A stretch of 63,980 nt of DNA, the filler included, from Pelomyxa schiedti (lineage: Eukaryota; Protista; Evosea), in NCBI GenBank assembly GCA_020536535.1. It is 5 parts of 5 records of this genome, joined end to end, with 100 filler letters (N's around TTAATTAATTAA, not from the genome) between each part and the next. Parts side by side here need not be neighbours in the genome. Positions count along the whole stretch, not along the records: positions 40,968 to 56,007 come from JAHLWZ010000108.1; 4 more parts are not named here. The stretch is one strand, 5' to 3'. A program made the position numbers and the translations under genes. Below the pieces are notes generated by a model. That model made no database searches. It saw nothing but the letters and a program-made list of their open reading frames with translations, and was not told where the DNA came from. Shown here piece by piece: positions 40,968-56,107 of this stretch. Within the stretch, counting starts at the first letter, position 1; each line of letters starts with the position of its first letter.

Positions 40968-41655
40968 TTTTTCCCTGGGGTCGGGCTGTGGGGGGTCTCG
41001 TATCATTTTGGGGCACTCGTGTCGAAGGATCAAAAAAATATTGGGGGGCTTCCGTGTTTGGGGTTCTTCGTTTTTTATTTCTTCCCTGGGGTCGGGGCTG
41101 GGGGTTTTACATTTTTGTGGGGTGCTTCGCTATTGGGGGATTCGCTGCCCGCACCCCGGAGCAAGGGGCAGGGCGGGCAGGCTTCGACGAATTTATTTTG
41201 GGGGTCTCCGTTGGGGGTTTTTTATATTTTCCCTGGGGTCGGGGGTTTTGGGGTGCTTATATCATTCTGGGGGACTCGTGTCGAAGGATCAAAATATTGG
41301 GGGGCTTCCATGTTTGGTTCTTCGTTTTTATTTCTTCCCTGGGGTCGGGGCTTGGGGGGTCTCGGGTTGGGGACTCGTCCCCCGGTGAGAGGCTGGGGGC
41401 AAACTAAGGGCGAGTTTAACATTTTTTTGGGGGTCTCCGGTCTTTGGGGGTTTTCTCTTCTTTTTTCCCTGGGGTCGGGCTGTGGGGATCTCGTATCATT
41501 TTGGGGCACTCGCGTCGAAGGATCAAAACATTGTGGGGGGTTCTTTCTTTTTCGGCCAGCCCATCGGCGCCCAGCTTGGCGCCTCCCCGCTTCTTCCGCC
41601 GTTCTTGTCGCGGAGTCGAGGAGGAGGCGCAGCGTGACGCTTCGGGGCCGACCTC
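40968..41655. repeat. rDNA 3'-flank/spacer repeat family (CCCTGGGGTCGGG and GTCGAAGGATCAAAA units)
   Basis: 41370-41425 is the reverse complement of 22382-22438 just downstream of the LSU; 41465-41655 is repeated at 43745-43936. Confidence 0.85.
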
Positions 41656-41811
41656 NNNNNNNNNNNNNNNNNNNNNNNNNNNNNNNNNNNNNNNNNNNNN
41701 NNNNNNNNNNNNNNNNNNNNNNNNNNNNNNNNNNNNNNNNNNNNNNNNNNNNNNNTTGCCAGCGCCTCTGGGGGACCCCCGCGAGCACGACCTTGCAGCT
41801 TCAAGTCTTCG

Positions 41812-43071
41812 GGGAGGCTCTGTCTGGTGAGGTGTTGGTGCGGCGGCGTTGGTAAAAAAAAAAAAAAGTAGGCTGTACCTTGAGACACGACCCACAGATG
41901 GTGTGGCCCGAGCTCGGTGATCCGGCGGAGTACGGTACCGTTGTCGGTAATTATATTCCCGATGGTCCAGTCCACTGGAGCTGGTGATGGCGGGAGGGTC
42001 AGTGCTACTTGGGAAAGGGAATGAGCAGTGCTCACATGTAGCTCCGGACAAGACAAAATGATCGGGCGTGTTGAATATTCGGGGTCCTGAATGGGGAACA
42101 TGATCTATGGTGCGGAACTTAATGAAGCTTGGCTCCCAGATGTAGTGAGGTGGAGGTTGCACCAGCCACCCCGGTGGCCACCCCGGCTCTGCGACTGTCT
42201 GGTCTCAGGGGAAAAAATAAAGCTAAAAATGAAAAGTACCAGGAGGGGGCTTAGGGGCTGCGCGGACGTCCTCTCTGGCCTTGTTGCTTGCGGCCCGTTT
42301 AGCTTTTGGGGGTCCTTCTTCATGATCAGTAAAAAATAAATTTTGGTTGTGGGATCTTACGGGCGACTGTGGCCTCGACTGGAGGCTCGACTGGGGGTTC
42401 TGCTGGAGGCTCGTTCTCTTCGGCCTCGTCGTCGGCCTCGTCGGCTGCATTGGCGGTTAAAATTTCCAGAAAAAAACATGTCTGGCTGACCTGTCTTGGG
42501 ATCAGCAGCTTCGTTGGCTGGGTCACGTCCCTTCTCGTGGGAGTGGCTTTTTTCTTTATTGGGTAAAAACATTAGAAAATAAATTCGCTCTTTGGGAAAC
42601 TTTACTGTGGTGGTGCCTGTGGTGCCTTTTCTTCTTGTGGCCCACTTGCTCCACCTCCGTTCTCGCTGAAAAGATATCAGAAAAGAATGTTGATGCTGGG
42701 AAAGCTCACCTTTGTGGTGGCCCTTGCTCTTTTTGTGGTGGCTGTGGTGCGCCTTCTTTTTGTCGCCCGCGTGCTCAGCCCCTTTGTCTTTGTAAAAAGT
42801 ATTCAAAAAAATATTATTGGGAGACTCACCCTTGTGGTGGTGCTTCTTTCCTTTTTTGTGGTGGCTGCTGTGGTGCCTCTTCTTGCCGTGGCCCCTCGGC
42901 TCCACCTCTGGCGGGTAGTCCTTGTTAGCAATAAAATCTGGCGAGGGGGCTGGTCTTACCCTCTCGTTCTTTTTCCGCAGGCTTCTCCAGGCCTGCAGTC
43001 TCGCTCTCCTCTGGAGTCCGTTCTGCCGACTCCTCCTCCGTCATTCCCTCGTTATTTACTTTCTCAGACAT
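41812..43071 (-). CDS. Exons 1-9 and start of exon 10 of a hypothetical ~693-aa protein (acidic, His/Lys-rich N-terminus)
   Basis: Exons 43071-42960, 42907-42830, 42781-42710, 42665-42606, 42553-42491, 42444-42361, 42317-42240, 42194-42036, 41980-41879; nine GT-AG introns of 43-55 nt, all phase 1. Exon 10 starts at 41823 and matches 51579 onward. Confidence 0.8.
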
Positions 43072-44539
43072 CTGTTTGGGGTTTGGTCAGAATCCATAAA
43101 TACAGAAGAATTGACGTCCCCGTAAAAAAAAAGGTGCGCAAGTGTGACGGCCGCCCGGGGTGAACGGCCGCCTTGTCCCCTTAAATATCCCCCGGCGAAC
43201 GCCAGGGGTAACCGTGGGGCGACACACCAAACCGCGGGAGCGAATTTTCTTCCCTTTCGGGATGCCGCCAGACGTTGCTCGATGGCCCTACTGGCCATTG
43301 CGTTTCTTTTGTGGGGATCTGCAGGAAATCGCAGCGGGTCATCAGGGTCGCCTTGTACATGCTGGCGGCCATTTTAGTTCTTGGCCCGCCCCGTTCGGCT
43401 CACCTCTGGTCTGGTCGGCCTCGCTCGTCCACATCCCCACCAGCTTTGTTTTGCGCGGTGAGGAGACGGGATCTGGCCGCAGAGCTTTGGGGCGCCGGCG
43501 GGGTGTTGCCTTGTTTCGCTCGCGGTTGGTCTTGTGTGTCCGCCAACTGGCTTTAAATATTTCGTGCGGACGGTGGGGATTTCGGAACCTCGAGTTACCG
43601 GCTTCCGGCTGGGGGCCGTAATCCGGGTGGTGCGTTGCGGGCAGCCTCGCGGAGCGAGGCGTGGTCCCACCAGAGGCACTGGCCGGCCGTTCATCTCTTA
43701 CTTGGCAGGCCGGCTCTTGTTTCGAATTGGTTTTTTTTCTTTTCTCCCTGGGGTCGGGCTGTGGGGATCTCGTATCATTTTGGGGCACTCGTGTCGAAGG
43801 ATCAAAACATTGTGGGGGGGGTTCTTTCTTTTTCGGCCAGCCCATCGGCGCCCAGCTTGGCGCCTCCCCGCTTCTTCCGCCGTTCTTGTCGCGGAGTCGA
43901 GGAGGAGGCGCAGCGTGACGCTTCGGGGCCGACCTCGGGATGGGTTGTCGGGAGGTTGTGCGGGCGTGGAAAAAAGCCGACGGGACGCTCCCGAGCCGAC
44001 CAGGGGCAGAGGCCGCGGGGAAAGGCCGAGAGGGTGCTAACAGTTCGCCTGCGGCCCGGAGCGGGACCCTTTTCGGGGTCGGGTCTTTGGGGATCTGGCT
44101 CCCCGCTCCAACCAGGCTTCGGCGCGTTGGCCCTCCTCTCCTTCCCTCCGTTTCCTCTGCCCTCGGCCGCCTCTGGCAGCGACGCTCGTGGCCTTTTTCC
44201 TCCCCGTTCCCCTCTCGCCGGGACTGCTGGGTTCTCCGTCCCGGGCAGGGTCAACTTGATACCCCGCCGGCCCTGCTGGCGGATTTTTTGGGCTTTTCGC
44301 TGCGGCCATCTCGATTCCCCCTGGCCGCCTGAGGGGTGGTGTTGCCCGCCACACACCATTTCTTTTAAATCTGACCGACTCCCGAGAGGCGGACGCCCTA
44401 ATTTTTTTTCTGCAGGACCTCCGGCGGCAAGAACCCATTCTCTCGGTCCCGTCGCACATCATTTCACTTTCGTTTTTTTTCGGGTGTCTCTGGTGCGTGG
44501 GCAGCATCGCGGCCATCTGGATTTCCCCTGGCCACCTGG

Positions 44540-47500
44540 GGGTGCTAGGCATATATTTGGGGGTTCGGGGCCCGCTACCTAGCTCGGTTTCCCCTTTCGA
44601 TCGGCTTCCCTCCAAAGAACTTCTGGGTAGCTCCGCAACTTTTTTTTTCGTGTCGCCCCGCTACCGTATCCGCCCTGTCACACAGGGGCCAGTCCTTGCT
44701 CTCAATTTTTTTTTCCATTGGCGCCTGGCTCAGCGTACCCGGCACTGCTTTTCTGTTCACGCATGTCAGACTTTTTTTTTCTCATTTTCAAGGACGAAGG
44801 TGCCCCGGGCTCGTGGTAAAATGGCGGGAGGGTGCTAACGTCCGGACCGTTGGCCCTCCTCCATTTCACCCTTCGCCAGCGTGCTGCGTGGCACTCTCGT
44901 CCGCGTTGGCCCCTCGCTCCTTCTTTTTGGCTGGGCGTAAGCCTCATTGACTCTCCATATTTTTTTTCGGCGAGACCTTGGCGAAGTTTGGTCCTCGTAC
45001 CGTGGCGCTGCCCCGCAGCACGCCTGCTCGTGGTAAAATGGTTGGAGGGTGCTAACGTCCGGCACGTTGGCCCTCCTGTCATTTACCATTCGCCTGCGTG
45101 CTGCGCGGCCCCGTCCCGTTCCGCCTCTCCATTCGCCGTTACAGCTCCAGAGTACCCTTTTTTTCGTTGGCTCACCTCCCTGCTCGTCCTTGCATCTCTA
45201 CCTCGGCATTTTGTTCTCATCTGGGCAACCGCTCAGGCCCCCACGCCGCGTCAGGCAGTCCTCGCTCTATTTTTTTTGTCTGGCTGCAGGTCCAATTGAC
45301 CCCTCTAGAGTATTCCCGCTCGCTTGCATATATTTCTTTTTCTCACTCTTCCCGTTTTTTTCCCAAGAGCGCCGCACAACGGCTCGTGGTGAAATGGCTA
45401 GAGGGTGCTAACGTCCGGAACGTTGGCCCTCTTTCCGTTCGCCATTCGCCGGCGTGCTGCGCAGCCGCGTCCCCCTCGGGCACCCCTTTGGCACAAGAGG
45501 CCTAATTTCTTTGCCTTTTTTCCCACTGGGCATCTCTCCTGGTCGTCTGACTTCTCTCCTCGGAAAAGGCTTACCACTCGTCCCTCCCTTGGGACCCAAT
45601 CTATTTTCGCAGCAGGGCCACCATATTTTTTTCTCCTGGCGTCTGGTACCATGGCATCTCATCCGCTCGTCGCCCTCCAGCTGTAAAGCCACCTTTTTTG
45701 TCGCCCCAGGTTGAAGTCTCAGTCCTCACCCTAAACTTTTTTTCTTCAAAACGATGGGCCCCTCCCGACCAGTTCCACTCTTTTCTTTCCCGGCATTTTT
45801 CCCCCGGATAAAAGATCCCTCTCTCGTTATTTGCATGTCCGGACTCACTTAAAGATTTCTTTGCCTCGCTCTTTCCTTTTTTTTCAGGCTTTCTCACTCG
45901 CTGCACACTCCATTTTTGGCCGAGGCCCTTGGGCCGGCGACGTGACCACCGGCTGAGTTTCGTTCCCGTACCGTGGCGCTGCCCCGCAGCACGCCTGCTC
46001 GCGGTGAAATGGATGGAGGGTGCTAACGTCCGGACCGTTGGCCCTTCCCAAGTTCGCCACTCGCCTGCGTGCTGCGCGGCTGCGTCTCGTTCCGGTCATT
46101 CTACTCCGCCGTTGCCAGCGTTGGCCCCCGTATTCCGTCGCTTCCATTTGTTCCAATCTGGTCTCCCCGGCCTCTCGTCTCGTTCCCACATCTTTTTTCC
46201 ACTGGCAGCACCCCTGGGTACAATTTTCCTCCGTGTCTGGCTCTCCTCTAGCGCATTTTTTCCTGCGGGGCCTCCATCTTTTTTCTCGCAAAATTCCCTC
46301 GTCCAGTCTCACCATCCTTCGGGGGTAGCCGTAGCTCTCCGCGGCCACCAGGCTGACGCCGCATTTTTTGGTTGGCCCTCCTTTGGCGCCCCCCTCGGTC
46401 TGTCAGGGGTATTAAGGTCCCACCTCACTGCCGGGAGCCCGAGCTGGGGGTGCTACCCTGACCCCCGCGCCCTGCCCCGCAGGCGCCGTTCCCCGCTCTC
46501 CTTTTTCCTCTGAGCGGGGCCCGACGCACCCCGCCCGAACATATCCCGCTCTTTTCTTTTCCGGCATTTTTCACTCTCGTCGGGCCGCAGAACCCGACAT
46601 TTTCCGATTTTTCCCCCGGATGGGAAAATCCCTCGCTCTCGCATGTCAGACTCGCTCTCTCATTTTCCCCTGCCTGGGGTAACCCCTCCCTCTCGCATGT
46701 CCTGACTCGCTCTCGGGATTTTTTCTCTCTCGTCTCGCTCCATGTCTCGTCGGTCTCACCATCTTTCGGGGTAGCTCTCCGCGGCCACCAGGCTGCCGCC
46801 GCATTTTTTTTCGTGGGTGCTAGGTATATATTTGGGGGTTCGGGGACCGCTCCCTAGCTTGGTCTCCCCTTTGGGTCGGCTCCCCTCCAAGGAACTCCGC
46901 AGCTCAATGCCGCAACTTTTTTTTCGTGTCGCCCAGCTACCATATCCGCACAGGGGCCAGTCCTTGCTCTAAATTTTTCGCCTGGCTCGACGGACCCGGT
47001 ACTGCTTTTCTGTTCACGCATGTCAGACTTTTTTTTTCTCATTTTCAAGGACGGAGGTGCACCGGGCTCGTGGTAAAATGGTGGGAGGGTGCTAACGTCC
47101 GGACCGTTGGCCCTCCTCCCATTCACCCTTCCCCAGCGTGCTGCGTGGCGCTCTCCCCCGCGTTGGCCCCTCGCTCCTTCTTTTTGGCTGGACATAAGCC
47201 TCATGGACTCGCCATACTTTTTTTTCGGCGAGACCTTGGCGAAGTTTGGTCCTCGTACCGTGGCGCTGCCCCGCAGCACGCCTGCTCGTGGTAAAATGGC
47301 GGGAGGGTGCTAACGTCCGGCACGTTGGCCCTCCTGTCATTTACCATTCGCCTGCGTGCTGCGCGGCCCCGTCCCGTTCCGCCTCTCCATTCGCCGTTAC
47401 AGCTCCAGAGTATCCATTTTTTTTTCGTTGGCTCACCTCCCTGCTCGTCCTTGCATCTCTACCTCGGCATTTTGTTCTCATCTGGGCAACTCGCTCAGGC

Positions 47501-48747
47501 CCCAACGCCGCGTCAGGCAGTCCTCGCTCTATTTTTTTTTGTCTGGCTGCAGGTCCAATTGACCCCTCTAGAGCATTCCAGCTCGCTTGCATATATTTCT
47601 TTTTCTCACTCTTCCCGTTTTTCCCAGGGGCGCCGCACAACGGCTCGTGGTGAAATGGCTAGAGGGTGCTAACGTCCGGAACGTTGGCCCTCTTTCCGTT
47701 CGCCATTCGCCGGCGTGCTGCGCAGCCGCGTCCCGCTCTGGCACCCCTTTGACACCACAACGGCTCAAGAGGCCTAATTTCTTTGCTTTTTTCCACTGGG
47801 CAACTCTCCTTGTCAAACGTCTGACCTCTCTCCTCAGAAAAGGCTTGCAACTCCATCTGGGACCCAATCTATTTTCGCGGCAGGACCGCCATAATTTTTT
47901 CTCCTGGCGTCTGGTCCCATGGCAGTATAAAAATCCAATCGGCTCGTCGCTCTCCTTCGGCTGTAAAGCCAACTTTTTGTCGCCCCAGATTGAAGTCTCA
48001 GTCCTCGCCCTCAACTTTTTTTTTTACTCAAACCGGACCCCTCCCTGCGTGTTCTACTCTTTTCTTTCCCGGCATTTTTCCTGGATTAGAAATCCCTCTC
48101 CCTCGCTCTTTCCTTTTTTTTTTAGGCTTTCTCACTCGCTGCACACTCCATTTTTTGCCGAGGCCCTTGGGCCGGCGACGTAACCACTGGCTGAGTTTCG
48201 TTCCCGTACCGTGGCGCTGCCCCGCAGCACGCCTGCTCGTGGTGAAATGGATGGAGGGTGCTAACGTCCGGACCGTTGGCCCTCCTGCCATTTACCATTC
48301 GCCTGCGTGCTGCGCGGCTGCGTCTCGTTCCGGTCATTCCGCTCCGCCATTGCCCGCGTCGACGTACCGAGCAGCCCCCAGATTCCGCCGCTTCCATTTG
48401 ATACCACTGGGCAGCCCCCTCCCACATCTTTTTTCCCCAGTGGGCGGCCTTGGCGCAATTTTCCTCCGTGTCTGGCCCCCTTCTAGCGCATTTTCCTGCG
48501 GGTCCTCCATCTTTTTTCTCGCAAGTGGCAAAACATTCTCTCGGGCCCGTCGGCTCACTGCATGTCTCGTCGGTCTCACCATCTTTCGGGGGGGTAGCTC
48601 TCCGCGGCCACCAGGCTGCCGCCGCATTTTTTTTCGTTTGGCCTCCTTTGGCGCCCCCCTCGGTCTGTCAGGGGTATTAAGGTCCCACCTCACTGCCGGG
48701 AGCCCGAGCCGGGGGTGCTACCCTGACCCCCGCGCCCTGCCCCGCAG
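44540..48747. repeat. Diverged ~2.25-kb tandem duplication, each copy with four hairpin elements
   Basis: Motif CTCGYGGTRAAATGG…GAGGGTGCTAACGTCCGGNNCGTTGGCCCT at 44810, 45027, 45383, 45998 and 47067, 47285, 47644, 48236 (offsets 2238-2261). Confidence 0.9.
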
Positions 48748-49990
48748 NNNNNNNNNNNNNNNNNNNNNNNNNNNNNNNNNNNNNNNNNNNNNNNNNNNNN
48801 NNNNNNNNNNNNNNNNNNNNNNNNNNNNNNNNNNNNNNNNNNNNNNNCTTCCCTCCGTTTCCTCTGCCCTCGGCCGCCTCTGGCAGCGACGCTCGTGGCC
48901 TTTTTCCTCCCCGTTCCCCTCTCGCCGGGACTGCTGGGTTCTCCGTCCCGGGCAGGGTCAACTTGATATCCCGCCGGCCCTGCTGGCGGATTTTGGGGTT
49001 TTTCGCTGCGGCCATCTCGATTCCCCCTGGCTGCCTGAGGGACTGGGGGTCTACGGGCCCATTTTAATGGGCCATTGGGCCATTAGGCTGGCCGATATTT
49101 CTTCTCCAGGGCATATGGCATCAAACGTTCCCTCAGTCGCGCATCGTTTCTTGCAAATTTTTTTTCGGGCGTAGCTCATGGCGACCTCTAGGTATCGCCC
49201 TCTCCTTACCTCTCTCCTGGTCGTCCTGACCCTCATCTCCTTTCCTCTCGTCTCTCCCTGCGGCAATTTTTCCGGGCGTAGCTCATGGCGACCTCTAGGT
49301 ATCGCCCTCTCTCCATCCTTGTCGTCCTGACCCTCCTCACCTTTTTTTTCTTTTGGGCGAGACCGCTGGACCCGCGGGCGTAGTCCCCGGCGAAGGTCGG
49401 TGCTCGTACCGTGACGGGGCCAGGGGCGGGCACGCGCTTGGGCAGAATGCGGGATATCCCAAACGTGGGTCTTCCCCCCATTCCCCCCGCCTTTCATGCC
49501 AGGCATAACCGACGTCCCGTTCCGAGCATTCCCCTCCGCCGTTGACCCCGCCAACGGACCCAGCGGCCTCCCAATTCCCTCGCTTCCTTTTTTCCCCTGG
49601 GCGGCATCTCTCCTTGGTCGTCCCGACCCTCCTCTCCTCTCCTCTCGTCCCTCCCTGCGGCAATTTTTCCGGGCGTAGCTCGTGGCGACCTCTAGGTATC
49701 GCCCTCTCTCCATCCTGGTCTCCGGTCAGTTCTCATCATTTTCCGGCGGGACCGCCTCTTTTCCCGCGGTGGCAAAAAATTCCCCCGTCCCGTCGTCTCG
49801 CTCTGTCTCCTTGGTCTCACCATCCTTCGGGGGGTAGCTCTCCGCGGCCAGCAGGCTGCCGCCACCTTTTTTTTTTCGTTTGGCCTCCTTTGGCGCCCCC
49901 CTCGGTCTGTCAGGGGTATTAAGGTCCCACCTCACTGCCGGGAGCCCGAGCCGGGGGTGCTACCCTGACCCCCGCGCCCTGCCCCGCAGG
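46330..49990. repeat. Dispersed ~155-bp spacer repeat (3 copies: ~46330, ~48594, ~49833) plus 3 copies of a ~45-bp GGGCGTAGCTCRTGGCGACCTCTAGGTATCGCCC unit (~49166, ~49274, ~49671)
   Basis: Near-identical text CTCGGTCTGTCAGGGGTATTAAGGTCCCACCTCACTGCCGGGAGCCCGAG in all three long copies. Confidence 0.85.
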
Positions 49991-51081
49991 CGCCGTTCCC
50001 CGCTCTATTTTTCCCAGGAGCGGGGCCCGACGGACCCCGCCCGAACATGTCCCGCTCTTTTCTTTTCCCAGCATTTTTCCCTCTCGTCGGGCCGCAGAAC
50101 CCGACGTTTTTCCGGTTTTCCCAGGGATGGGAAAATCCCTCGCTCTCGCATGTCAGACTCGCTCTCCCATTTTTCCCCTGCCTGGGGTAATCCCTCGCTC
50201 TCGCATGTCCCGACTCGCTCTCGGGATTTTTTTTTATTTTTTCTCTCGCATCGGGCTCGCTCTTCCAAAAAAATGGCTTTTTTCCGAGAAGCGCCTCCTT
50301 GTTCGGAACAAGTCGGTTTCTCAATATGAAGTCGGATACCCTATTTTTTTTCCCTTAAGCGTTAACTGAAAAAAAACGTACTTTGCGTTGATGACTCCGA
50401 CCGAAATTCGAAGTTTTCCAGAGGAATCCATTCTGTATGACTTTGTGAATTTCGATTTTGACTTAGTGGTTCCACCGTTTTGACTTTTTGTGTTTCGGCC
50501 CGACTTTGCGATTTTTTACAGCGCGGACTTTGCGTTTTTCATGTTGTTTTCTTCTGTCGGACTTTGTTTTTGGTCTCGACTTTGCGTTTCTTGATAGACT
50601 TCGTTTTTCGGCTTTCCAGTTTCGTCAAAGTCGCAAGCCTAATCTCATGTGGTCCCGCCGGAAGAAAAACAAAGTCGAAACGAATGCGGTAAAGTCGATC
50701 CCGAAACGCAAAGTCGAATAATTTGTGAAGAGCGGGAGTCATGAGGGGTCTGCCGATTGGACCTCCCGCTCTCCGGCAGACCCCTCTCGAACCTTTCGGG
50801 AGACCCTCCCGAATGATTTTCCTCGCGACTTTGCGTTTTCGTTTTGCCTTTGCGTTTTTCTTTTCGGCTTCGTTTTTCGATTTTTTGCGAAATTTGAAGT
50901 GTCAGTCCCGGATGGAAATTCATTCCGCAGACCCTCATGGGTCTCGCGGTCCTATTTCTCGCCCGAGTTCTCGCTCTCGACTTTGCTTTTTCGTTTTGCC
51001 TTTGCGTTTTTATTTTCGACTTCGTTTTTCGATTTTTTTGCGAAATTTGAAGTGCCCGTCGGTCTTGAAAATAGGTTCAGA

Positions 51082-51445
51082 GACCCCTCCCGAACATTTT
51101 TTGACATTTTCAGCAGACCCTCCTGGAGCGACTCGCGGTCCTTACGGGAGCCCCCCGCTCCCCTGGGAAAAAGAAAAATAGAAAATAAAAATCAGCAGGG
51201 GGAACCATGAGGGGTCTGCTGATTCCCCGTCTCGCTCTCCCGCAGACCCCTCCCGAACATTTTTTGACATTTTCAGCAGACCCTCCTGGAGCGACTCGCG
51301 GTCCTTACGGGAGCCCCCCGCTCCCCTGGGAAAAAGAAAAATAGAAAATAAAAATCAGCAGGGGGAACCATGAGGGGTCTGCTGATTCCCCGTCTCGCTC
51401 TCCCGCAGACCCCTCCCGAACATTTTTTGACATTTTCAGCAGACC
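51082..51445. repeat. 163-bp tandem repeat (2.2 copies here and at ~52963-53326; 3.2 copies at 53948-54474)
   Basis: GACCCCTCCCGAACATTTTTTGAC starts at 51082, 51245, 51408 and at 53948, 54111, 54274, 54437. Confidence 0.92.
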
Positions 51446-51578
51446 CAAAATAAAAATCAACACTGAGACATGTAGCACCCCTGGTGCTGCGGCAAAAAAA
51501 GAAAGAAAGAAAGAATTGCTTGGGAAAAAATTTTATTATTTTTTTTTTACCAACGCCGCCGCACCAACACCTCACCAG

Positions 51579-52852
51579 ACAGAGCCTCCCCGCCAGACTT
51601 CAATCGAGTACTCTGGGATTTCATTGCTCACCCAGGCGACTACAGCGACATCCAGTCCATGCCACTGCTCTGCATGGACCCCATCAGACCATTGCCTATG
51701 CCGTACCCCAGGGTCGAGATCTTGGGCCGATATTGGGAGAGGCGCTGGGCCGCTGAGCCCCAACACGAAATGCCGGAGCACAGGCGTCTCCTCCGAATCT
51801 TCGACCAATGGGCCCGCGAGGCGGAGCTGCTGCTGACCAAATGGGATGAGAGATGGACCTTCTGGACATATAGGAGGCACAGGGGGCTGGACAGCCCGTA
51901 CAGGCAGTCGTGGCGCACGCTGGACGCGCAACTCAAGGACCACGGCAGGGCATTTATGGACTTCCAAGAAATATTTTGCCAGCGCCTCTGGGGGACCCCC
52001 GCGAGCACGACCTTGCAGCTTCAAGTCTTCGGGGAGGAGTTCATGGTGTACAGCAGCGAGATAGGGGGGCCAAAGAGGCGCTGGATGGCCAAAGGGTGGA
52101 ACCTCTTCAAGGTTCAGCTGGCTGGACACCTATCGTGCAGCTTTCGAAAAACGGGACTCAGCAAGAAGGGGCTACTCACGCCGTCGGACAAAATTACATT
52201 GAGCGCGGCCAGGGAGCACGTTGGGATTGTCCTCCAGAGTGTATTGGATGGCATGAGGGAGATGAACAAGGGCTTCCCGAAAAAACCGCTCGTGCCTGGG
52301 ACAAAGACCGGCTGGAAGTTCGACTTTCTCGCCATGCCAATGGACCATTGCCTCTCAAGGCTGGTGGGGTACCTGCTGAACGAGGCCCTCGCTAAGGGAT
52401 TCAAGGTGATTTTTCCCCGTGGCGCTGCCGGGGTGGCTGGAGCGCGAGTCGTGGGGCAGTACCCGATTGTGGCGCTGGCCGGAGGTGGGGCACCGTGGTA
52501 CTTCTGGCAAATACAGAAGGAGCAGCCGGTCACCGTCGTGCACCTGGAGGGATGGGGCTGGCACGTGGTGCTGGACGGGATCAAGGAGCGCTGGTGCCGT
52601 TTCTGGCTGTACAGAGACGGGGATGAGCAGTTCTGTGTGCCAGCCAGCAGAAGAGAAGGCTGGCATTTCGAAGTTCTTGGCGGATGGGGGAACCTGAACG
52701 AGGCTGTGGAGTCGGAGGTTGGCGAGGAATGGCTGCGGGGGGCTGCGGAGAGGGGAGAACCGGCATGGGCGAAGCGCACACTACTAGAGATCACTTACAC
52801 AGGGCCTACAGCAGTGCTTGCCCTCACCAAGCCACCCCCAAAAAAGATGTGA
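51579..52852 (+). CDS. Terminal exon (contains the 397-aa ORF) of the hypothetical spacer-encoded protein; Trp-rich domain of unknown family
   Basis: Frame is stop-free from the repeat boundary 51551 to the stop at 52850-52852; acceptor CACCAG at 51578 joins in frame to exon 9 (…VVSQ-D-RASPPDFNRVLWDF…). Confidence 0.8.
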
Positions 52853-54584
52853 ACAAAGTAAAAAAAAAATAATAAAATTTTTTCCCAAGCAATTCTTTCT
52901 TTCTTTCTTTTTTTGCCGCAGCACCAGGGGTGCTACATGTCTCAGTGTTGATTTTTATTTTGGGTCTGCTGAAAATGTCAAAAAATGTTCGGGAGGGGTC
53001 TGCGGGAGAGCGAGACGGGGAATCAGCAGACCCCTCATGGTTCCCCCTGCTGATTTTTATTTTCTATTTTTCTTTTTCCCAGGGGAGCGGGGGGCTCCCG
53101 TAAGGACCGCGAGTCGCTCCAGGAGGGTCTGCTGAAAATGTCAAAAAATGTTCGGGAGGGGTCTGCGGGAGAGCGAGACGGGGAATCAGCAGACCCCTCA
53201 TGGTTCCCCCTGCTGATTTTTATTTTCTATTTTTCTTTTTCCCAGGGGAGCGGGGGGCTCCCGTAAGGACCGCGAGTCGCTCCAGGAGGGTCTGCTGAAA
53301 ATGTCAAAAAATGTTCGGGAGGGGTCTCTGAACCTATTTTCAAGACCGACGGGCACTTCAAATTTCGCAAAAAAATCGAAAAACGAAGTCGAAAATAAAA
53401 ACGCAAAGGCAAAACGAAAAAGCAAAGTCGAGAGCGAGAACTCGGGCGAGAAATAGGACCGCGAGACCCATGAGGGTCTGCGGAATGAATTTCCATCCGG
53501 GACTGACACTTCAAATTTCGCAAAAAATCGAAAAACGAAGCCGAAAAGAAAAACGCAAAGGCAAAACGAAAACGCAAAGTCGCGAGGAAAATCATTCGGG
53601 AGGGTCTCCCGAAAGGTTCGAGAGGGGTCTGCCGGAGAGCGGGAGGTCCAATCGGCAGACCCCTCATGACTCCCGCTCTTCACAAATTATTCGACTTTGC
53701 GTTTCGGGATCGACTTTACCGCATTCGTTTCGACTTTGTTTTTCGATTTTTTGCGAAATTTGAAGTGTCAGTCCCGGATGGAAATTCATTCCGCAGACCC
53801 TCATGGGTCTCGCGGTCCTATTTCTCGCCCGAGTTCTCGCTCTCGACTTTGCTTTTTCGTTTTGCCTTTGCGTTTTTATTTTCGACTTCGTTTTTCGATT
53901 TTTTTGCGAAATTTGAAGTGCCCGTCGGTCTTGAAAATAGGTTCAGAGACCCCTCCCGAACATTTTTTGACATTTTCAGCAGACCCTCCTGGAGCGACTC
54001 GCGGTCCTTACGGGAGCCCCCCGCTCCCCTGGGAAAAAGAAAAATAGAAAATAAAAATCAGCAGGGGGAACCATGAGGGGTCTGCTGATTCCCCGTCTCG
54101 CTCTCCCGCAGACCCCTCCCGAACATTTTTTGACATTTTCAGCAGACCCTCCTGGAGCGACTCGCGGTCCTTACGGGAGCCCCCCGCTCCCCTGGGAAAA
54201 AGAAAAATAGAAAATAAAAATCAGCAGGGGGAACCATGAGGGGTCTGCTGATTCCCCGTCTCGCTCTCCCGCAGACCCCTCCCGAACATTTTTTGACATT
54301 TTCAGCAGACCCTCCTGGAGCGACTCGCGGTCCTTACGGGAGCCCCCCGCTCCCCTGGGAAAAAGAAAAATAGAAAATAAAAATCAGCAGGGGGAACCAT
54401 GAGGGGTCTGCTGATTCCCCGTCTCGCTCTCCCGCAGACCCCTCCCGAACATTTTTTGACATTTTCAGCAGACCCAAAATAAAAATCAACACTGAGACAT
54501 GTAGCACCCCTGGTGCTGCGGCAAAAAAAGAAAGAAAGAAAGAATTGCTTGGGAAAAAATTTTATTATTTTTTTTTTACTTTGT

Positions 54585-55858
54585 TCACATCTTTTTTGGG
54601 GGTGGCTTGGTGAGGGCAAGCACTGCTGTAGGCCCTGTGTAAGTGATCTCTAGTAGTGTGCGCTTCGCCCATGCCGGTTCTCCCCTCTCCGCAGCCCCCC
54701 GCAGCCATTCCTCGCCAACCTCCGACTCCACAGCCTCGTTCAGGTTCCCCCATCCGCCAAGAACTTCGAAATGCCAGCCTTCTCTTCTGCTGGCTGGCAC
54801 ACAGAACTGCTCATCCCCGTCTCTGTACAGCCAGAAACGGCACCAGCGCTCCTTGATCCCGTCCAGCACCACGTGCCAGCCCCATCCCTCCAGGTGCACG
54901 ACGGTGACCGGCTGCTCCTTCTGTATTTGCCAGAAGTACCACGGTGCCCCACCTCCGGCCAGCGCCACAATCGGGTACTGCCCCACGACTCGCGCTCCAG
55001 CCACCCCGGCAGCGCCACGGGGAAAAATCACCTTGAATCCCTTAGCGAGGGCCTCGTTCAGCAGGTACCCCACCAGCCTTGAGAGGCAATGGTCCATTGG
55101 CATGGCGAGAAAGTCGAACTTCCAGCCGGTCTTTGTCCCAGGCACGAGCGGTTTTTTCGGGAAGCCCTTGTTCATCTCCCTCATGCCATCCAATACACTC
55201 TGGAGGACAATCCCAACGTGCTCCCTGGCCGCGCTCAATGTAATTTTGTCCGACGGCGTGAGTAGCCCCTTCTTGCTGAGTCCCGTTTTTCGAAAGCTGC
55301 ACGATAGGTGTCCAGCCAGCTGAACCTTGAAGAGGTTCCACCCTTTGGCCATCCAGCGCCTCTTTGGCCCCCCTATCTCGCTGCTGTACACCATGAACTC
55401 CTCCCCGAAGACTTGAAGCTGCAAGGTCGTGCTCGCGGGGGTCCCCCAGAGGCGCTGGCAAAATATTTCTTGGAAGTCCATAAATGCCCTGCCGTGGTCC
55501 TTGAGTTGCGCGTCCAGCGTGCGCCACGACTGCCTGTACGGGCTGTCCAGCCCCCTGTGCCTCCTATATGTCCAGAAGGTCCATCTCTCATCCCATTTGG
55601 TCAGCAGCAGCTCCGCCTCGCGGGCCCATTGGTCGAAGATTCGGAGGAGACGCCTGTGCTCCGGCATTTCGTGTTGGGGCTCAGCGGCCCAGCGCCTCTC
55701 CCAATATCGGCCCAAGATCTCGACCCTGGGGTACGGCATAGGCAATGGTCTGATGGGGTCCATGCAGAGCAGTGGCATGGACTGGATGTCGCTGTAGTCG
55801 CCTGGGTGAGCAATGAAATCCCAGAGTACTCGATTGAAGTCTGGCGGGGAGGCTCTGT
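54585..55858 (-). CDS. Identical inverted copy of the terminal exon
   Basis: Same 397-aa translation in the ORF track; reverse complement of 51579-52852. Confidence 0.75.
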
Positions 55859-56107
55859 CTGGTGAGGTGTTGGTGCGGCGGCGTTGGTAAAAAAAAAATA
55901 ATAAAATTTTTTCCCAAGCAATTCTTTCTTTCTTTCTTTTTTTGCCGCAGCACCAGGGGTGCTACATGTCTCAGTGTTGATTTTTATTTTGGGTCTGCTG
56001 AAAATGTNNNNNNNNNNNNNNNNNNNNNNNNNNNNNNNNNNNNNNNNNNNNTTAATTAATTAANNNNNNNNNNNNNNNNNNNNNNNNNNNNNNNNNNNNN
56101 NNNNNNN

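Follow-up and report, generated by a model that had tools for sequence, protein, structure and literature searches.

Three annotated genes of Pelomyxa schiedti are parts of one ten-exon gene, probably broken by amplification chimeras

Analysis of scaffold JAHLWZ010000108.1 of the anaerobic amoeba Pelomyxa schiedti (GCA_020536535.1) revealed that three genes annotated there, Pelo_1298, Pelo_1300 and Pelo_1301, are one gene of 692 amino acids that has been split by misassembly. The scaffold occupies positions 40968-56007 of the window, that is, of the whole stretch of DNA analysed (63,980 nt, an artificial concatenation of five parts of this genome), and coordinates are given along the window throughout. 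We consider it probable (roughly 0.85) that the locus is an ordinary nuclear gene with ten exons, nine short GT-AG introns and a product of ~692 residues, which phi29 chimeras and scaffolding by RNA pairs have broken on the scaffold. An initial annotation, made from the sequence alone, had spliced nine minus-strand exons onto a tenth at 51579-52852 and had taken the resulting gene to be hidden, multicopy and linked to ribosomal DNA (rDNA). The scaffold order at the gene is wrong and this join is right.

The join was examined by comparing public sequencing runs with positions 41756-43700, the hits being contigs of four DNA runs (X1-X4) of one sample and one study. The contig sets of these runs amount to 23-50 Mb, their longest members reaching 47-84 kb, and they are therefore genomic. 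They contain 99% of the sampled 31-mers of 41756-43400, and the remaining 1% may consist of words running across the chimeric joint described below. In each run there is one gene-carrying contig, of 3364 nt in three runs and of 2444 nt in X3. From 43700 down to 41810 these contigs match the scaffold with zero differences and with all introns present; 383 nt past 41810 comes 51976-52037, in the direction of the gene, continuing into 52038 and onward. As 51976 minus 51593 is likewise 383, exons 1-9, intron 9 and exon 10 are colinear on one contig. The distance between exon 9 and exon 10 is 55 nt in the independent contigs, compared to 8.5 kb in the scaffold, and the proposed splice onto 51579-52852 is hence borne out at the DNA level by colinear contigs from four runs. 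The alternative of two separate genes, one with exons 1-9 and one with exon 10, was rejected, since only 55 nt separate the two parts, the frame is kept and the intervening intron is canonical. The 3364-nt contig has an expected span of ~43774 to ~52991, each end reaching ~30-45 nt into a repeat. A further run (X5; 2025, DNA, under another organism label and from another study) contains 8% of the sampled words of 41756-43400; its source may be a related Pelomyxa or an environmental sample.

Upstream of the join, the product of Pelo_1298 (P0004, 275 amino acids) maps onto the minus-strand DNA in one way only, as nine exons and a terminal 23 nt, and its donor sites are those of the nine exons that had been proposed between 43071 and 41879. 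The introns measure 52, 48, 44, 52, 46, 46, 45, 55 and 55 nt, all nine having GT-AG boundaries, and their GC content is 0.27-0.58 versus 0.59 for the exons. The spliced frame is open for 692 codons, while the unspliced one is interrupted, and the retention of any single intron, intron 2 excepted, brings in a premature stop. Branch motifs had been noted earlier in several introns; a branch-like YTRAY motif lies 15-22 nt from the acceptor in five of the nine. The previously reported dimensions stood in part, as the nine short GT-AG introns are confirmed, but the model presented here has introns of 44-55 nt (not 43-55 nt) and comes to 2079 nt and 692 amino acids (not 2082 nt and 693), the two versions differing solely in which of the adjacent AG dinucleotides is taken as the acceptor of introns 2, 6 and 7. 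For exon 3, an alternative acceptor at 42787, 6 nt upstream, also keeps the frame. An open frame through these exons is, by itself, weak evidence, since 48 of 288 acceptor combinations (one in six) stay open when introns may measure 40-56 nt, and 13020 do so when 30-74 nt is allowed. The exon-plus-intron units 2-4 (42554-42920, minus strand) form a tandem triplication with a mean column identity of 71% and with donors and acceptors in register, and to judge from this pattern the His/Lys-rich tract that they encode appears to have grown by tandem triplication of one such unit.

Comparison with the public annotation places the three GenBank models on this structure. Pelo_1298 (43071-41801, minus strand, 275 amino acids) has the same exons 1-9 and the same nine donor sites, and differs in that the chimeric joint ends it with a false stop. 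Pelo_1300 has the same exon 10 and the same acceptor, and differs in an invented first exon of two residues, whereas Pelo_1301 is the inverted copy of exon 10 and differs in an internal ATG start and a spurious internal intron. The gene was accordingly not hidden, all of its parts having been annotated already; the reconstruction given in the initial annotation betters the public one, although the parts themselves were known. Nor are nine introns out of the ordinary, as had been implied by calling an intron-rich gene non-standard, in a species with a mean of 7.4 per gene (PMC8887013). The gene identifiers Pelo_1298, Pelo_1300 and Pelo_1301 are not mentioned in the supplements of the P. schiedti genome paper (PMC8887013).

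The manner in which the genome was obtained offers an explanation for the split. The assembly DNA came from seven micromanipulated cells and was amplified with a phi29 kit; Illumina and Nanopore sequencing was followed by SPAdes in single-cell mode and then by P_RNA_scaffolder, and Augustus, PASA and EVM together with a transcriptome supplied the gene models, giving a mean of 7.43 introns per gene with GT-AG boundaries in 98.4% (PMC8887013). P_RNA_scaffolder joins two contigs when the two mates of RNA-seq pairs have their unique mapping positions one on each contig, with a default spacer of 100 N (PMC5834899). The scaffold contains exactly two runs of N, of 100 nt each (41656-41755 and 48748-48847), which divide it into three contigs, C1 (40968-41655), C2 (41756-48747) and C3 (48848-56007). 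Both gaps are P_RNA_scaffolder spacers of arbitrary size and not measured distances, and no coding sequence spans either of them.

Inside the contigs, two junctions disturb the gene. In C2 the junction is an 8-nt match, CCTCCCCG, at 41810-41817; the inverted 62-nt piece (41756-41817) that comes after the first 14 nt of exon 10 creates the false stop at 41803-41801, such that the product ends in ...DRASPKT, six codons into exon 10. In C3 the last 28 nt of intron 9 precede the intact exon 10, and the junction is a 12-nt T10AC at 51539-51550, a string common to the poly-T of intron 9 and to the reverse complement of the poly-A after the stop codon. The join at this T10AC is an inversion, and 50664-51550 is therefore the exact reverse complement of 52858-53744 (887 nt each); the inverted arms in C3 are 100% identical over 887 nt and 1898 nt. 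A second version of the 3' flank, at 53692-54579, carries one extra 163-nt unit relative to 50664-51550 (3.2 versus 2.2 copies).

Chimeras generated by phi29 in multiple displacement amplification (MDA) are inverted with an intervening deletion in >85% of cases, and >70% have a junction complementarity of 2-21 nt (PMC1855051). Both joins described here are inverted, with complementarities of 8 nt and 12 nt. The likeness to the chimeras of Lasken and Stockwell (2007, PMC1855051) extends to the inversion, the intervening deletion or loop, the 8- and 12-nt junctions, the 100% identical arms and the use of phi29-amplified DNA; our case differs in that the amplification origin is inferred, and in that part of the flank duplication is 95% and not 100% identical. 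The palindrome of C3 and the end of C2 would then be amplification chimeras that were carried into the assembly, and the copy of exon 10 at 54585-55858 is probably an assembly or amplification duplicate.

The proposed course of events starts from a compact, colinear genomic gene of ~2.5 kb from ATG to stop, situated between repeat arrays. Amplification of single cells by phi29 would have produced inverted chimeras at short microhomologies, one of which would end contig C2 just inside exon 10, while another would fold the 3' flank back onto intron 9 in C3, leaving exon 10 present twice and in opposite orientations. The RNA-seq-pair scaffolder would subsequently have strung C1, C2 and C3 together with 100-N spacers, and the pairs linking C2 and C3 may well derive from the transcript of this gene. 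It is because the scaffold was broken that the annotators called three genes, Pelo_1298, Pelo_1300 and Pelo_1301. The coordinates of all features are collected in Table 1.

Table 1. Features of the gene and its surroundings on scaffold JAHLWZ010000108.1 (window positions)
Feature	Positions	Strand	Remarks
Exon 1	42960-43071	-	ATG at 43071, the start codon also given in the initial annotation; acidic N-terminus; unique mapping of P0004
Exon 2	42830-42907	-	First His/Lys-rich unit; follows the 52-nt intron 1 (42908-42959)
Exon 3	42710-42781	-	Second His/Lys-rich unit; P0004 mapping
Exon 4	42606-42665	-	Third His/Lys-rich unit; P0004 mapping
Exon 5	42491-42553	-	P0004 mapping
Exon 6	42361-42444	-	Acidic, Pro-rich, PPVEP motif; P0004 mapping
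Exon 7	42240-42314	-	P0004 mapping
Exon 8	42036-42194	-	Trp-rich part of the protein begins; P0004 mapping
Exon 9	41879-41980	-	P0004 mapping
Intron 9 (41878-41824, 55 nt) and first 14 nt of exon 10	41810-41878	-	Last stretch colinear with the independent contigs
Chimeric contig end	41756-41817	+	Identical to 51976-52037, inverted; joined at an 8-nt microhomology
Exon 10, intact	51579-52852	+	424 codons and stop; first 2 nt complete a split codon; main exon of Pelo_1300
Exon 10, second copy (Pelo_1301)	54585-55858	-	Inverted repeat, 100% identical
Arm A	50664-51550	+	Reverse-complements the 3' flank exactly; T10AC marks the joint with the end of intron 9
3' flank (arm A')	52858-53744	+	163-nt tandem repeats from 52962; independent contigs reach ~52991
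First repeat unit upstream of the gene	43729-43936	+	Recurs at 41449-41655 (97%); independent contigs end inside it, at ~43774
Scaffolder join C1/C2	41656-41755		100 N
Scaffolder join C2/C3	48748-48847		100 N; flanks are repeats and mutually non-continuous

The structure of C3 could also be taken at face value, as a real palindrome or a flip-flop invertible segment, with the truncated Pelo_1298 as a natural isomer. Exon 10 does stand in both orientations between perfect 887-nt inverted repeats, and the existence of two versions of the flank (95% identity over the distal 269 nt and an extra 163-nt unit) points to more than one real genomic copy of the flank. The junctions, however, lie in a T10AC run of intron 9 and in an 8-nt match within an exon, not in repeats of the type expected for recombination. 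Moreover, the contigs of the four runs pass both points colinearly and without a branch, with the limits that X1-X4 share one sample and study and that contigs lose rare variants, and the DNA had been amplified by phi29, a reaction which yields exactly such structures. We regard a real inversion as improbable. A decaying or unexpressed copy, giving rise to no functional transcript, would agree with the fact that no public RNA run was found to contain the stretch, with the absence of relatives outside P. schiedti and with the ease by which a frame through the 5' exons stays open by chance in stop-poor sequence. Yet the 692-codon frame is intact on colinear DNA, the 34% identity to the paralogue Pelo_8201, with many invariant Trp, Gly and Cys positions, argues for selection on the protein, the contigs that carry the two halves of the gene were joined by a scaffolder that requires RNA-seq pairs, and the evidence-based pipeline of the annotators called the identical nine introns; decay is, in our judgement, quite improbable.

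Three observations weigh against a single colinear gene broken by chimeras, the explanation preferred here. Contigs drop rare variants, so the A/X junction (51536-51560) may persist at low frequency in real DNA. The distal 269 nt of the second flank copy (53692-53960) are only 95% identical to arm A, and the duplication is therefore not wholly a fold-back, as the flank does have a real second allele or repeat unit. Finally, among the public runs that match the 5' part of the gene, none is on record as RNA and no junction read was seen, so that splicing is supported indirectly, by the RNA-pair joins of the scaffolder and by the evidence-based gene models.

The initial annotation had further placed the gene on an rDNA unit or rDNA episome, as a multicopy gene with, perhaps, a nucleolar or episome-maintenance role. 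The surroundings of the gene are indeed spacer-like, with tandem and inverted repeats on both sides and a strong strand asymmetry; a 57-nt match had been noted between the repeat of C1 and the 3' flank of the large-subunit (LSU) rRNA gene on another piece, and a basic His/Lys tract is compatible with nucleolar targeting. An Rfam search over 40968-56007, on the other hand, returned no rRNA and no family at the gathering score, and no linkage to 18S/5.8S/28S was found within the 15-kb scaffold. The 57-nt match, the sole link, is to another part of the artificial concatenation and lies outside the piece, and a short shared repeat is no proof of physical linkage. As to copy number, exon 10 alone is duplicated and exons 1-9 are not, and the extra copy, inverted and with 100% identity, is attached through a 12-nt microhomology, as in amplification chimeras; the word depth of the contigs (9-30x) comes from amplified single cells without a baseline and is not a copy number. 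The paralogue Pelo_8201, in addition, lies on a different scaffold among ordinary genes. Protein-coding genes on rDNA units or episomes, such as the rDNA circles of Entamoeba and Naegleria named in the initial annotation, resemble the locus only in their repeat-rich, spacer-like surroundings, whereas the Pelomyxa piece has no rRNA gene and no demonstrated linkage or shared copy number. Neither the rDNA link nor the multicopy state was thus upheld, and we consider a gene on an rDNA unit or episome very improbable. It is likewise very unlikely that rDNA intergenic-spacer repeats make up the arrays on either side of the gene; were this so, the rDNA unit of a multinucleate archamoeba would contain, and be amplified together with, a spliced RNA polymerase II gene encoding a lineage-specific, His/Lys-rich protein.

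Under the preferred explanation, the practical outcome is a correction by which three GenBank 'hypothetical proteins' become one 692-residue gene product, and the palindromes and 100-N gaps of the scaffold should not be taken as biology. The case also serves as a caution, since amplified single-cell assemblies that are scaffolded by RNA pairs may yield inverted duplicates and split genes which resemble exotic arrangements.

The joined 692-residue model was used for frame and composition only, and homology searches covered exon 10, Pelo_1298, Pelo_8201 and the open reading frame (ORF) of the paralogue. Residues 1-40 of the model are acidic (15 Glu), residues 41-115 comprise three repeated units with 23 His and 20 Lys, residues 116-160 are acidic and Pro-rich, and all 27 Trp residues fall in the Trp-rich region that starts at about residue 185. 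This composition agrees with the earlier description of an N-terminus that is acidic, then H/K-rich and then acidic and Pro-rich, and the Trp-rich C-terminus is, as had been stated, free of any recognised family, with no match in Pfam or the PDB. The model has no hydrophobic segment (maximum Kyte-Doolittle value 1.25) and, because of this and of its acidic N-terminus, the protein is probably soluble and not secreted. The alternately charged N-terminal region is probably disordered.

The stop-free run over exon 10 extends for 458 codons, compared to a maximum of 268 in 200 shuffles. A HMMER search with exon 10 against 1.84 billion cluster-representative proteins returned itself and one paralogue, Pelo_8201 (KAH3759975.1), which matches it with 32-34% identity over ~355 residues (E = 2.7e-42). 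Many Trp, Gly and Cys positions are invariant between the two, and exon 10 is in this way conserved at the protein level. Pelo_8201 shares the motifs GWKFDFLAM, YPI.ALA and GWGWH...DGI and has a Pro-rich PPVEP stretch upstream; it differs in its location (scaffold JAHLWZ010000641.1), in its uninterrupted and apparently intronless frame of 560 codons and in having no His/Lys-rich repeats. As the frame of Pelo_8201 extends upstream through the Pro-rich PPVEP stretch, the N-terminal extension is a family trait, and exons 1-9 have no significant similarity to Pelo_8201. The public model of Pelo_8201 comprises 392 amino acids from position 5106 of its own locus (L002, on JAHLWZ010000641.1) with a 99-nt intron, while the DNA has one frame of 560 codons (L002 4701-6383, plus strand); the upstream part of this frame overlaps a minus-strand model at 1625-4965 of the locus, so that an error in either of these two models is probable. 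Word searches with exon 10, and with a profile of exon 10 and Pelo_8201, found only P. schiedti's own proteins. From these sequence comparisons the gene appears to be species-restricted, its relatives amounting to one P. schiedti paralogue. The protein is an orphan with a single paralogue, and its relevance is limited to those who work on Archamoebae.

The C-terminal Trp-rich part may form a folded alpha/beta domain common to Pelo_8201. With regard to function, composition alone leads us to a tentative and rather doubtful suggestion, namely a soluble protein of the nucleus or nucleolus with an affinity for polyanions or nucleic acid, in which the His/Lys tract would serve to localise the protein or to bind, and the specific activity would reside in the lineage-specific C-terminal domain. 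A nucleolar role would be compatible with the basic His/Lys tract. Several results tell against this suggestion, as does the fact that it is drawn from composition only. Pfam assigned no family to exon 10, Pelo_1298, Pelo_8201 or the upstream ORF of the paralogue, and no PDB sequence was matched in a profile search with E values of up to 10. The recognition scores of feature searches in the ESM Atlas, 1087 and 1206, lay far below what is useful, and the hits were not used. The AlphaFold2 models were unusable, with a predicted local distance difference test (pLDDT) score of 34 for exon 10 alone and of 32 with the two-sequence alignment.

The gene is surrounded by repeats, with 234-259-nt units upstream, a ~2.26-kb tandem repeat at 44.7-49.3 kb and 163-nt repeats downstream. 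The right end of C1 (41449-41655) and the left end of C3 (48848-49041) are 97% copies of 43729-43936 and 44141-44335, two stretches of C2 that lie upstream of the gene with ~200 nt between them. The order C1-C2-C3 is therefore doubtful, and C1 and C3 look, at the level of sequence, like a second copy or allele of the region upstream of the gene. Within the tandem repeat at 44700-49300, the units are 93-98% identical and contain internal sub-repeats of 165-250 nt; its plus strand is strongly pyrimidine-rich, with an AT skew of ~-0.4. No RNA family was found in this repeat, and Pfam searches of the eight longest ORFs of the flanking repeats gave no family and no sign of a transposon or other gene. 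A scan for promoters and terminators of the bacterial type was set aside as not applicable to a eukaryote. An annotated gene of 128 amino acids (49051-49481, minus strand), which lies within the ~2.26-kb repeat, is probably spurious. Upstream of the main start, an ATG at 43097 opens a 13-codon frame (43084-43097, minus strand) that overlaps the main start out of frame and might represent a short upstream ORF within the 5' leader.

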